IMG/VR virus record: IMGVR_UViG_3300047476_002078
Span: 291,875 to 355,874 of that record
Strand: one strand, 5' to 3'
Length of the DNA stretch: 64,000 nt
Part shown: positions 55,557 to 64,000 of the stretch, in pieces
How positions within the stretch are numbered: the first letter of the stretch is position 1
Layout of the letters: each line of letters starts with the position of its first letter
Program-made: the position numbers and the translations under genes
Notes under the pieces: model-generated
Seen by the model: the letters and a program-made list of their open reading frames with translations, nothing else
What the model was told of the DNA's origin: nothing
The model's database searches: none

Positions 55557-58500
55557 ATGTCATTTCAAGATTTATTAGCTGGTGCGATTACAAATGCTGT
55601 TCAAACTTATGCGGAACTTTTGTCTGTTGTGAATCCACAAGACAAAGAAGTTCGCTACGTAAATGATTTGGACACTTTCTTTTTTTATGATGCTCAAACA
55701 ATGGAGTGGAAACCTTCCTTTGCAACGATTCAACCTGCACAAGGTTTGACAGGTGTTCAAGGAGCCACTGGGGTTGCAGGCTTGCAGGGAGCGACAGGTA
55801 TTGAAGGAATTCAAGGTCAAACAGGTGTCGGAGCACAGGGAGCAACAGGGGTACAAGGTGTAGAGGGTCCAACAGGAATTGTAGGAACCACAGGTATTCA
55901 AGGAAATACAGGAGTTCAAGGAACTACAGGAATCCAAGGTTCCACAGGTATTGCAGGTATTTCAGGAGCAACGGGTGTAGGAACACAAGGAGCGACAGGT
56001 ATTCAAGGTCCTCTGGGAGAAAGAGGTGTTCAGGGTATCCAAGGTCAAACAGGACCTAGCGGATTCACAGGCGTTCAAGGTAACACTGGAGTTCAAGGGA
56101 TAACAGGTCAACAAGGTATAATGGGTAATCAAGGTCAAACAGGACCTAGCGGATTCACAGGTGTTAAAGGTGAAACCGGAGTTCAAGGAGCCACAGGGGT
56201 TCAAGGCGAAACAGGGGTTCAAGGAGCCACAGGAGTCCAAGGTAATACAGGAATCCAAGGCGAAACAGGGGTTCAAGGAGCCACTGGCGTTCAAGGAGCG
56301 ACAGGGGTTCAAGGCGAAACAGGAGTTCAAGGAGCGACAGGGGTTCAAGGCGAAACAGGAGTTCAAGGAGCCACAGGGGTTCAAGGCGAAACAGGAGTTC
56401 AAGGAGCCACAGGAGTCCAAGGCGAAACTGGGGTTCAGGGAGCCACAGGAGTTCAAGGAGCCACAGGAGTTCAGGGAACCACTGGAATCCAAGGTGAAAC
56501 TGGAGTCCAAGGAGCCACAGGAGTACAAGGAAATACAGGTGTTCAAGGAGCCACAGGGGTTCAAGGAGCCACAGGGGTTCAAGGCGAAACAGGAGTTCAA
56601 GGAGCCACTGGCGTTCAAGGAGCCACTGGCGTTCAAGGCGAAACAGGAGTTCAAGGTAATACAGGGGTTCAAGGAGCCACAGGGGTTCAAGGCGAAACCG
56701 GAGTCCAAGGAGCCACAGGAGTTCAAGGTAATACAGGGGTTCAAGGAGCCACAGGGGTTCAAGGCGAAACAGGGGTTCAAGGAACCACAGGAGTTCAAGG
56801 AGCGACTGGAGTACAAGGTGAAACTGGTGTTCAAGGAGTCCAAGGAACCACAGGTGTCCAAGGAACCACAGGGGTTCAGGGTGAAACAGGGGTTCAAGGA
56901 GCCACAGGAGTTCAAGGAAATACTGGTGTTCAAGGAGCCACAGGAGTTCAGGGCGAAACAGGGGTTCAAGGAACCACAGGAGTTCAAGGAACCACAGGAG
57001 TCCAAGGAACCACAGGAGTTCAAGGAAATACAGGAGTCCAAGGTGCGACGGGAGTCCAAGGCGAAACTGGAGTCCAAGGCGAAACAGGAGTCCAAGGCGA
57101 AACAGGGGTTCAAGGAACCACAGGAGTTCAAGGAGTCCAAGGTGAAACTGGAGTTCAAGGAACTACAGGAGTTCAAGGTGTCCAAGGAACCACAGGGGTT
57201 CAAGGAGCCACAGGGGTTCAGGGCGAAACAGGGGTTCAAGGAACCACAGGAGTCCAAGGCGAAACAGGTGTCCAAGGAACCACAGGAGTTCAAGGAGCCA
57301 CAGGAGTTCAGGGCGAAACAGGAGTCCAAGGAACCACAGGAGTTCAGGGCGAAACAGGAGTTCAGGGCGAAACAGGGGTTCAAGGAGCCACCGGCGTTCA
57401 AGGTGAAACAGGGGTTCAGGGCGAAACAGGAGTCCAAGGCATCCAAGGAGCCACAGGTATAGCAGGAACCTCTGGAGGAACTGGTATTCAGGGCGAAACT
57501 GGGGTTCAAGGAACCACAGGAGTCCAAGGCGAAACAGGTGTCCAAGGAGCCACAGGAACCGTGGGTTTACAAGGACCTATAGGGGTTACAGGTATTCAAG
57601 GAGCCACTGGAGTCCAAGGGGTAACGGGAACAGGCGAAACTGGTGTGCAAGGTATCCAAGGTCAGACAGGGGCACAGGGAGCAACTGGGGCAGGAGGAAT
57701 ACCGTTAATTGAATCTGACGATGAGTCAGTCGCCAGATTTAATGGAACAGACGGTCAGGTTCAAAATTCAAATATATTTATAAATGATAATGGAGATATT
57801 TTACCAAAAACTGACGCTTCTCAGGATTTAGGAGCAACAGGTCTTAGATTTAGAGATTTACATCTATCGGGTAACTCTATTTTCATTGGCGATATTAAAT
57901 TATCTTCTGAATCAGGTGCTTTTAAAATTTCGGATTCAACAAATGATGAAGTCCTTCTTCAAATTTCAAACAACCTAATTACAGGTTCACAAGCTTTACA
58001 AGGGATGACTGGAGTCCAAGGCGAAACCGGAGTCCAAGGAGCCACAGGTGTACAGGGCGTTCAAGGGGAAACGGGCGTTCAAGGTGAGACGGGAGTACAG
58101 GGAGCCACCGGTGTACAGGGCATCCAAGGTGAAACTGGAGTTCAAGGTGAGACTGGTATTCAAGGTGAAACTGGGGTTCAAGGAGCCACAGGTATAGCAG
58201 GAACTTCTGGAGGAACTGGTATTCAAGGTGAAACTGGGGTTCAAGGAGCCACAGGTATAGCAGGAACCTCTGGAGGAACTGGTATTCAAGGTGAAACTGG
58301 GGTTCAAGGTATCCAAGGTGAAACAGGCGTAGCTGGAATCAATGGTGAAACTGGGATTCAAGGAGCCACAGGTGTCCAAGGTGTCCAAGGTGAAACTGGG
58401 GTTCAAGGTATCCAAGGTGAAACTGGGGTTCAAGGAGCCACAGGTGTCCAAGGTGTCCAAGGTGAAACAGGCGTTCAAGGTGAAACAGGAGTTCAAGGAG

Positions 58501-61500: not shown

Positions 61501-64000
61501 TCCAAGGAACTACTGGAGTCCAAGGCGAAACTGGGGTTCAAGGAACTACTGGAGTCCAAGGCGAAACTGGAGTTCAAGGAGCGACTGGAGTTCAAGGAGT
61601 CCAAGGTGAAACTGGAGTCCAAGGCGAAACAGGGGTTCAAGGAGCCACTGGAGTTCAAGGAACAACTGGCATCCAAGGCGAAACTGGGGTTCAAGGAGCC
61701 ACAGGCGTTCAAGGTGAAACTGGAGTCCAAGGAGTCCAAGGTGAAACAGGGGTTCAAGGAGCCACAGGCGTTCAGGGGATGACTGGAGTCCAAGGTGAAA
61801 CTGGGGTTCAAGGAGTCCAAGGTGAAACAGGCGTACATGGAACTACTGGGGTTCAAGGAGCCACAGGAGTCGCTGGTGTAACAGGTTTTCAAGGTGCTCA
61901 AGGTTTTACAGGAGTAGATGGGAGAACAGGCGTACAAGGAGCCACAGGGGTTCCGGGCGTTATTTTAAATATTTTTGAAACAGGAATTCAAGGAGCTACA
62001 GGTTTTCAAGGAGTCACAGGGGTTCAAGGTAATACTGGAGTTCAAGGAAATACAGGGGTTCAAGGGGTTCAAGGAACCACAGGCGTTCAAGGTGAAACTG
62101 GGGTTCAAGGAGCCACAGGAGTTCAAGGAGCCACAGGGGTTCAGGGAGTCCAAGGTGAAACTGGAGTCCAAGGTCAAACAGGTGTTCAAGGTGAAACTGG
62201 GGTTCAAGGAACCACAGGCGTTCAAGGCGTTCAAGGTGAAACAGGAGTTCAAGGAACCACAGGAGTCCAAGGTGAAACTGGGGTTCAAGGAGCCACAGGC
62301 GTTCAGGGGATGACTGGAGTTCAAGGCGAAACTGGAGTTCAAGGCGAAACTGGAGTTCAAGGAGCTACTGGAGTCCAAGGTGAAACTGGAGTCCAAGGCG
62401 AAACTGGGGTTCAAGGAGCCACAGGAGTCCAAGGCGTTCAAGGCGAAACTGGAGTCCAAGGTGAAACTGGGGTTCAAGGAGCCACAGGAGTTCAAGGAGC
62501 TACTGGAGTCCAAGGTGAAACTGGAGTTCAAGGCGAAACTGGGGTTCAAGGAGCCACAGGAGTCCAAGGCGAAACAGGAGTCCAAGGTGTCCAAGGTCAA
62601 ACTGGAGTTCAGGGAGCCACAGGAGTCCAAGGTGAAACAGGAGTCCAAGGAGCCACAGGAGTCCAAGGTGAAACAGGAGTCCAAGGAGCCACAGGAGTTC
62701 AAGGAACCACTGGGGTTCAAGGTGCGACAGGAGTCCAAGGTGAAACTGGAGTTCAAGGTCAAACAGGAGTCCAAGGTGAGACTGGAGTTCAAGGAGCCAC
62801 AGGAGTCCAAGGAGTCCAAGGTGAAACTGGAGTTCAAGGAGCCACAGGCGTTCAAGGTCAAACAGGAGTCCAAGGTGAAACTGGAGTCCAAGGAGCCACA
62901 GGCGTTCAAGGTCAAACAGGAGTCCAAGGTGAAACTGGGGTTCAAGGAACCACAGGAGTTCAAGGCAATACAGGAGTCCAAGGTGAAACTGGGGTTCAAG
63001 GAACCACAGGAGTCCAAGGTGAAACTGGGGTACAGGGAATCCAAGGCGAAACTGGGGTTCAAGGAGCCACAGGTGTTCAAGGTGAGACTGGGGTTCAAGG
63101 CGAAACAGGAGTTCAAGGAGCCACTGGAGTCCAAGGTGAAACAGGGGTTCAAGGAGCCACTGGAGTCCAAGGTGAAACAGGGGTTCAAGGAGCCACAGGG
63201 GTTCAAGGCGAAACAGGAGTTCAGGGAACCACTGGAGTTCAAGGTGAAACAGGAGTCCAAGGTGTACAAGGAACCACTGGAGTTCAAGGTGAAACAGGAG
63301 TTCAGGGAACCACAGGAGTCCAAGGCGAAACTGGAGTCCAAGGTGAGACTGGTGTCCAAGGTGAGACTGGTGTCCAAGGTGAGACTGGTGTCCAAGGAGC
63401 CACAGGAGTCCAAGGAGCCACAGGGATTCAAGGAACCACAGGCGTTCAAGGAGCGACTGGCGTTCAGGGAGTAACTGGTGCAAGAGGAATTCAAGGTCTA
63501 GTAGGTCTAACAGGAATACAAGGAACCACAGGAGTTCAAGGAGCCACAGGGGTTCAAGGTGAAACTGGGGTACAGGGAGCCACAGGGGTTCAAGGTCAAA
63601 CAGGTGTTCAGGGTGAAACAGGAGTCCAAGGAGCCACAGGAGTTCAAGGCGTTCAAGGAGCTACTGGAGTCCAAGGCGAAACTGGTGTCCAAGGAGCCAC
63701 AGGAGTCCAAGGCGAAACTGGGGTTCAAGGAGCCACAGGCGTTCAAGGAGCCACAGGCGTTCAAGGTGAAACAGGAGTCCAAGGAGCCACAGGAGTCCAA
63801 GGTGAAACTGGGGTACAGGGAGCCACAGGGGTCCAAGGTGAAACAGGAGTCCAAGGAGCTACTGGAGTCCAAGGCGAAACTGGGGTTCAAGGAGCCACAG
63901 GCGTTCAAGGTCAAACTGGAGTCCAAGGCGAAACTGGTGTTCAAGGTGAAACAGGAGTCCAAGGCGAAACTGGAGTACAGGGAGCCACAGGCGTTCAAGG
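55557..64000 (+). CDS. giant collagen-like (Gly-X-Y) fibre protein, at least 2814 aa, 3'-truncated; missing from the ORF track
   Basis: ATG 55557 (AGGAAG upstream). Frame confirmed at 55920, 57660, 59100, 61920 and 63960, with no stop seen in the stretches translated. 62-aa N-domain, then GVQ/GAT/GET/GTT triplets; non-collagen domains at about 57699-58001 and 59112-59507. Confidence 0.93.
55743..64000 (+). repeat. 9-bp triplet repeat array (GG-N GTT/C CAA; GG-N GCC/GAA AC-N) encoding the collagen helix
   Basis: Directly visible; GC content much higher than the rest of the window. Confidence 0.97.

Follow-up and report, generated by a model that had tools for sequence, protein, structure and literature searches.

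A candidate homotrimeric collagen-like fibre of 3,082 residues, almost free of proline, in an uncultured freshwater jumbo myovirus

The stretch of DNA analysed here (hereafter the window) comprises 64,000 nucleotides of IMG/VR record IMGVR_UViG_3300047476_002078, positions 291,875 to 355,874, and forms the final 64 kb of one contig of 355,874 bp. From position 55557 to its final base it encodes a collagen-like protein, which we interpret, with a probability of roughly 60%, as the subunit of a homotrimeric collagen-like virion fibre that serves an uncultured freshwater jumbo myovirus as a long-reach adhesin. The complete protein has Gly at each third residue over 885 triplets, the longest run being 273 triplets, and its four rods would sum to a contour of ~760 nm if they are entirely triple helix. 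The phage was found in at least three freshwater or lake samples.

Translation of frame 1 from the ATG at 55557 gives 2,814 codons with zero stops up to the window end at 64000. The contig's final 87 bases repeat its first 87 exactly, so that window positions 63914-64000 duplicate L001 1-87, where L001 (G000:C1:1-20000) is the start of the circularised contig that carries the window. IMG/VR places the record in the class with direct terminal repeats, with a CheckV completeness of 100%. Located inside a reading frame, the 87-bp repeat is best read as the overlap left by linearising a circular, circularly permuted map, and its removal leaves a circle of 355,787 bp. After closure the register continues unbroken until a stop codon at contig bases 890-892 (L001 890-892), and the complete product has 3,082 aa, a mass of 288.5 kDa and an isoelectric point of 4.05. 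A plain end-to-start join, which would make the protein 3,111 aa long and introduce a spurious break, one residue short, at the joint, was dropped given the 87-bp overlap.

The overlap falls inside the largest gene of the genome. The contig was linearised inside this gene and the frame runs off its end, and for this reason the gene was overlooked by the open reading frame (ORF) caller; gene callers recorded two fragments, one N-terminal of 78 aa (P0021) and one C-terminal of 102 aa (L001 584-892). Many long spurious ORFs (up to 527 aa) are produced by the repeat of 55557-64000 in other frames and on the minus strand, a risk for mis-annotation. An AGGAAG box precedes the start codon and sits in a 174-nt AT-rich divergent intergenic region (55383-55556) that is shared with a glycosyltransferase operon. 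Over the fibre gene the G+C content rises from ~33% to 50-54%, as expected from the codons for Gly, Val, Gln, Thr, Glu and Ala. Ten RNA runs from lake water or wastewater contain 6-17% of the sampled words from the 5' part of the gene (window 55400-59700), a weak hint of its transcription. The gene and the parts of its product are laid out as follows, with rod lengths that assume 0.286 nm per residue and all residues triple-helical.

55546-55551, plus strand: ribosome-binding-type box AGGAAG, seen in the sequence itself, 5 nt upstream of the ATG
55557-64000, plus strand: collagen-like fibre gene, first 2,814 codons, open frame 1, continuing at the start of L001
55557-55742, plus strand: N-terminal non-collagen module, aa 1-62 (62 aa)
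55743-57704, plus strand: collagen rod 1, aa 63-716 (654 aa, 216 triplets, ~187 nm)
55833-55838, 55983-55988 and 57636-57641, plus strand: one-residue-short breaks of rod 1
57705-58001, plus strand: insert A, aa 717-815 (99 aa, beta-rich)
58002-59117, plus strand: collagen rod 2, aa 816-1187 (372 aa, 124 triplets, ~106 nm)
59118-59507, plus strand: insert B, a globular node, aa 1188-1317 (130 aa)
59508-61964, plus strand: collagen rod 3, aa 1318-2136 (819 aa, 273 triplets, ~234 nm)
61965-61982, plus strand: LNIFET register break, aa 2137-2142 (6 aa)
61983-64000 and across the contig junction to L001:517, plus strand: collagen rod 4, aa 2143-2958 (272 triplets, ~233 nm)
L001:518-889, plus strand, outside the window: C-terminal head, aa 2959-3082 (124 aa)

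A preliminary description of this DNA had proposed one very long collagen-type phage gene, unseen by the ORF lister, with Gly-X-Y segments of about 650, 370 and more than 1490 residues. The 2,814 open codons that run off the window end and a match to the Pfam Collagen family agree with it, and inside the window the segments measure 654, 372 and ~1,497 aa, the last consisting of two runs split by LNIFET. Its length arithmetic holds and the total even rises with the 885 triplets of the whole gene, and the extension of the contig towards the C-terminus that it had suggested is provided by the circular overlap. The hinges that it listed fared less well. GIAGTSGGT, which occurs three times, and GVFGTSGGT consist of in-register triplets (GIA-GTS-GGT), and of the five sites LNIFET alone breaks the register. 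The true discontinuities are the two globular inserts, this 6-residue break, which is the only multi-residue register break within a rod and a possible kink, and three breaks in rod 1 that had been missed, each one residue short (GVG-AQ-G, GVG-TQ-G and GTG-ET-G, at aa 93, 143 and 694).

The composition of the rods is strongly biased. Val (46%), Glu (18%) and Ala (15%) dominate the X positions, and Gln (49%) and Thr (46%) the Y positions, where Thr occurs 407 times; GVQ, GET and GAT are the most frequent triplets, in a pattern of mainly GVQ alternating with GxT. Proline is nearly absent, as had been noted before, with 19 of 3,082 residues (0.6%; 0.9% of X and 0.3% of Y). Thus the protein lacks the substantial imino-acid content that is typical of, though not strictly defining for, the collagen family. 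Two segments nevertheless match Pfam Collagen (PF01391) with E values of 4e-101 and 1e-133 (331 and 435 bits, against a cut-off of 27.2). The fibre gene is the sole long Gly-X-Y gene of the genome.

The single-sequence AlphaFold2 (AF2) model of the head has a predicted local distance difference test score (pLDDT) of 67.9. In Foldseek it matches the BclA C-terminal domain, C1q-like/C1QL proteins, ExsFA/BxpB, BC2L-C-Nt and PLTL (E ~1e-4, template modelling (TM) score at most 0.68), with the BclA structures 3tyj, 1wck and 2r6q among the top fold matches. Matches among viral models are C1q-domain proteins, collagen-repeat proteins and receptor-binding proteins of tail fibres, from phages as well as giant viruses (TM at most 0.76), and the best of them include proteins of the Mimivirus, Marseillevirus, Pandoravirus and Pithovirus groups. 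With moderate confidence, we assign the head a TNF/C1q/BclA-like jelly-roll fold. Its 19 metagenomic homologues (42-50% identity) stand at the C-terminus of fibre-like proteins, one of which has a collagen stalk; in some we recognise the repeats of classic tail fibres. For one homologue, the surrounding phage contig also encodes a holin, a tail tube and T4 baseplate proteins. The head query retrieved no viral locus and no cultured-phage match.

Structure prediction suggests that the head and adjoining stalk trimerise. Three copies of the last 159 aa scored 0.92, compared with 0.00 for the best control; partner pLDDT was at least 87, runs shared at least 96% of contacts, and every terminal Gly-X-Y residue was placed in the predicted interface. 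In calibration 20 of 30 solved pairs reached the mark for this call, as did 1 of 23 single chains; these counts apply only roughly here.

At the other end of the protein, the N-terminal module is 55% identical to its counterpart in a distant relative, a 155-kb contig (G001) found by searching with the neighbouring glycosyltransferase. An exhaustive search of 1.84 billion representatives with a profile of the module returned five matches, namely its own 78-aa fragment and four weak ones, and profile scans of IMG/VR and JGI metagenomes returned three contigs only, all of the lineages described here. Two of the weak matches are long proteins in which the module is an internal repeat. From their sequences both appear tail-fibre-like, and one of the two (P0024) has a family match, to BppL_N.

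Insert A carries the motif D-L-G-x4-R-F-R-D-L-x-L-S-G-N-S-I, which occurs three times in a 679-aa collagen-containing fibre protein; a similar motif ends a collagen protein of cyanophage S-CAM7. The predicted model of the insert is beta-rich and weak. Insert B has no match to the head by BLASTP, and profile-profile comparison finds no relation between the head family and either insert B or the nodes that divide the G001 array. By protein-language-model features alone, insert B resembles BclA_C/C1q-type domains (score 0.94, 184-188 shared features). The two chain ends of a C1q-type jelly roll emerge on one face, and an insert B of this fold would thus be a bud or sharp kink rather than an in-line bead. 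PDB sequence searches with insert A, insert B, the head, the N-terminal profile and the G001 nodes gave chance-level matches only. The head family, the insert A motif and the repeats of the N-terminal module are all shared with tail-fibre-type proteins.

The genes around the fibre gene in this genome include those of the tail and baseplate:

30373-33141, upstream of the fibre gene: tail sheath
42849-51421, plus strand: baseplate/tail-accessory genes, just upstream of the glycosyltransferases and the fibre gene
43613-46732, plus strand: gp6-like wedge, in the baseplate module alongside a baseplate protein
49809-50387, plus strand: weak match to a tail-fibre-network component, in the baseplate module
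51566-53917, minus strand: multi-domain glycosyltransferase (GT1/GT4 + GT2 + GT1, 783 aa), 61% identical and syntenic in G001
53904-55382, minus strand: glycosyltransferase with a GT2 domain and TPR repeats (492 aa), 57% identical and syntenic in G001

The baseplate module also contains a 1,011-aa unknown protein and a weak tail protein match. Downstream of the fibre gene, at the contig start, is a gene for a virion structural protein that is 46% identical to gp329 of the Tunturiibacter phage Tunturi_5. This phage is the nearest isolate by sheath (35.7% identity), and its tail region has no Gly-X-Y gene. A megablast of 20 kb of the window against cultured phages gave no match.

Both glycosyltransferase genes are divergent from the fibre gene, and the cassette of collagen gene plus two glycosyltransferases is kept in G001, whose other flanks differ. 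Next to the glycosyltransferases, G001 also has two methyltransferases (L006 3766-4413 and 6160-6753), a possible sign that the fibre bears methylated sugars. A third multi-domain glycosyltransferase (GT2 + Glyco_tranf_2_5, 746 aa) is encoded in the structural region of the genome studied here, at 23009-25249 on the minus strand. An independent case of such adjacency is S-CAM7 (KU686213.1, L013 5781-17382), in which the gene for a collagen-like tail fibre of 1,410 aa comes directly after a cluster of GDP-fucose/deoxy-sugar and glycosyltransferase genes.

Several results weigh against a tail-borne, glycosylated collagen fibre. The N-terminal module has no Pfam, PHROG or PDB match and no homology to a known baseplate adaptor; in G001 the cassette has no baseplate genes nearby on its 155-kb fragment, and the assignment of the fibre to the virion draws on gene context and modules. 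Word-based, PDB and profile searches with insert B found no homologue outside its own lineage, and the AF2 model of insert A, rod 2 and insert B has no usable fold (pLDDT 33.9). The head is below the thresholds of Pfam BclA_C (PF18573) and C1q (PF00386), and BclA_C touches 1 of 20 members of the head family (E 4e-4). A 642-kb uncultured phage (LR756502.1) has a 1,509-aa collagen gene without glycosyltransferase neighbours, so the link between collagen and glycosyltransferases, present here (G000), in G001 and in S-CAM7, is not general. Finally, the stability of a triple helix with less than 1% imino acids is itself a proposal.

The first two of these points would fit a fibre that decorates the surface of the capsid or tail, as hair or head fibres, and gives loose adhesion to particles, mucus or cells. 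Jumbo phages with hair-like appendages do exist, on the head in PTm1 and on the tail in Y3 (PMC13282480). In the present genome, however, the fibre gene directly follows the baseplate module, and its N-terminal module, insert A motif and head are those of tail-fibre-type proteins; we consider a surface decoration unlikely.

It could also be that the Gly-X-Y region does not form a triple helix and is instead a disordered or other kind of thread or coat, such as an entropic spring or hydrated brush. With 0.6% Pro the protein offers no hydroxylation substrate, the monomer model of rod 2 has a pLDDT of ~30, and the known stable phage collagens, EPclA among them, depend on ~50% Pro in X (PMC3368898). 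Against this, the strict Gly periodicity is kept under strong purifying selection: the ratio of nonsynonymous to synonymous substitution rates (dN/dS) is 0.067 across 601 codons in comparison with a ~90%-identical strain (L003). The trimer model places the terminal triplets in a confident three-chain interface, and the low pLDDT of rod 2 is uninformative, as a monomer fold cannot show a triple helix. Val, Glu and Ala at X and Gln and Thr at Y are favourable residues for those positions in host-guest peptide work, and Thr glycosylation and cold lake water would lower the demand on stability. Overall, a region that is not triple-helical seems to us quite unlikely.

All sequence data used here are short-read, and mis-threading of the repeats could have made the array length substantially wrong, with a true gene that is much shorter, much longer or heterogeneous. 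Both contig ends fall within the array. Public k=31 contigs from the same samples shatter it into 50-650-bp pieces and therefore cannot confirm its order or total length. Rod 2 has the only near-perfect local repeat of the protein, a 63-nt unit (58152-58309) that contains GIAGTSGGT and whose copies are 98% identical; an IMG/VR contig from another data set (L002) has four copies of it in its last ~190 bases, compared with two in the window, and is otherwise identical to the window. This difference is either copy-number variation or an assembly ambiguity. A strain of ~90% identity (L003) has the same overall layout, with 90 rather than 124 triplets in rod 2 (34 fewer) and an additional 81-aa globular insert in rod 1 (ORF aa 631-711). 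In the array of G001 some exact repeats exceed 151 nt, which makes its assembly less secure.

In the closed array of the present genome, by contrast, all 71-mers are unique. One 12-residue peptide occurs 68 times in 56 different 36-mers, the opposite of stutter; mean pairwise identity of its copies at the DNA level is 0.872, where independent codon draws predict 0.829. As codon choice is near random, the copies are old and scrambled at synonymous sites and not the product of assembler stutter. L002 and the window share 100% identity in the opening 2.77 kb of the ORF. In three runs, pieces that are unique at k=31 have near single-copy depth; small unitigs tile the contig junction, and two other lineages show an equal or greater scale. 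For this assembly the array length is probably correct to a few percent, and we give little credence to a substantial error. Between strains the length clearly varies, and nodes and rod lengths turn over quickly.

The least probable alternative is that the protein is no part of the virion and is produced in the host during infection, where it would remodel or aggregate the cell surface or act as a shield against other phages. Bacterial collagen-like proteins do often belong to the cell surface or the exosporium (PMC8968730). This gene, however, has baseplate genes upstream and a virion structural gene downstream, the sequence shows no N-terminus that resembles a signal peptide, and the modules are typical of phage fibres.

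If the gene does encode a virion fibre, assembly would begin at the C-terminal TNF/C1q-like jelly-roll head, which would set the three chains in register, and the triple helix would zip from the head onward, as in other collagens. The globular inserts are probably extra registration or nucleation points, or hinges, that divide the ~2,655 collagen residues into four rods. The N-terminal module would attach the fibre to the virion, with the baseplate as the likeliest site, and the distal head would recognise a ligand on the host surface, plausibly a glycan. Collagen helices bend over tens of nm, although published values vary widely; a contour of 760 nm thus implies a flexible thread with a reach of a few hundred nm rather than a rigid rod. 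In dilute lake water a tether of ~0.76 µm contour could widen the radius within which the phage captures hosts, or it could allow the phage to reach across thick envelopes.

The helix, being low in Pro, could be stabilised by hydration-friendly Gln and Thr in the Y positions together with the low temperature of the habitat. Additional stability may come from the two adjacent, conserved glycosyltransferases, which are proposed to O-glycosylate the 407 Thr residues at Y. In bacterial collagens Thr is the dominant Y residue (PMC8968730), and Thr glycosylation is a known collagen stabiliser (PMC3368898). With glycosylated BclA as a precedent (PMC8968730), the Thr residues of this fibre are probably O-glycosylated.

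Fibres of this kind are already known, as collagen regions are widespread in phages and the design of a collagen stalk with a C1q-like head is common among viral models. A tblastn search with a 300-aa piece found collagen-like regions in 482 phage records, and among the matches listed the annotations were mostly tail fibre, minor tail or collagen-like protein. According to a citation in PMC1079782, knowledge of collagen repeats in phage tail fibres goes back to 1998; a 2026 review on the biology of jumbo phages contains no mention of collagen (PMC13282480). What is new here is the scale, the near-absence of proline, the several long rods split by swappable globular nodes, and the conserved two-glycosyltransferase cassette.

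The closest parallels among phages are the S-CAM7 tail fiber protein (AOV62422.1) and the EPcl proteins, which likewise have a Gly-X-Y stalk with Y positions rich in Thr and Gln and a beta head at the C-terminus. The collagen gene of S-CAM7 also stands beside a glycosyltransferase/sugar cluster, and one of the collagen proteins of this phage has the insert-A-like motif; however, S-CAM7 has 146 triplets in 1,410 aa, compared with 885 in 3,082 aa here. EPclA of an E. coli prophage is a proven trimeric triple helix (PMC3368898), with ~50% Pro in X, unlike the <1% of the present fibre (PMC3368898). Neither system has in-line globular nodes that split several rods of 100-230 nm.

BclA, the hair of the Bacillus anthracis exosporium, shares the arrangement of N-terminal anchor, Thr-rich collagen stalk and C-terminal TNF/C1q-like trimer, and its stalk is glycosylated (PMC8968730). 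It differs in its GPT-rich repeats and far shorter length, whereas the fibre described here is phage-encoded, has internal inserts and a head that fails the BclA_C model. The best superpositions of the head are with the TNF-like lectins BC2L-C (N-terminal domain) and Photorhabdus PLTL and with gC1q (TM 0.59-0.68), all trimeric jelly rolls; their sequence identity to the head is only 13-19%, and a lectin function of the head is only a suggestion. Mimivirus and related giant viruses likewise combine virus-encoded collagen repeats with virus-encoded glycosylation (PMC8968730), but they infect eukaryotes and glycosylate hydroxylysine, whereas here the virus is a tailed phage and Thr is the candidate acceptor. 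Among jumbo myoviruses, the Tenacibaculum phages PTm1 and PTm5 and Erwinia phage Y3 have long flexible extra appendages by electron microscopy (PMC13282480). No link of these appendages to collagen is reported in that review.

The collagen ORF of G001 (L005 = G001:C1, 2-19780, minus strand) extends over at least 6,593 aa and meets the contig end before any stop, so that its 2,043 triplets and ~1.75 µm are lower bounds. Its array is split by three paralogous 128-aa nodes (SGYSEYY…FAPA), which are unrelated to the inserts of the window and have no PDB or Pfam match. The 885 triplets here are ~6x the 137-146 of the two long phage collagen genes measured, and G001 has at least 2,043. A more far-reaching reading, which we offer tentatively and at less than even odds, is that a lineage of freshwater jumbo phages makes micrometre-scale, proline-free triple helices, registered by nodes and stabilised by Thr glycosylation, as fishing lines for host capture (~0.76 µm here, at least 1.75 µm in the relative). 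To our knowledge, such threads would exceed every phage fibre or collagen-like protein in the collections searched.

For annotation, the gene is a warning that the largest gene of a "complete" circular phage contig can become invisible after linearisation inside it. As a natural, gene-encoded collagen of ~2,650 residues, almost proline-free and with a candidate glycan-based stabilisation, it is of interest for collagen biophysics and recombinant collagen materials. If the fibre is real at this length, it would change the picture of how far a phage particle reaches for its host and would bear on adsorption kinetics in dilute waters; should the reading as micrometre threads also be true, this lineage would have a distinct solution to collagen stability and a multiplied host-capture radius.

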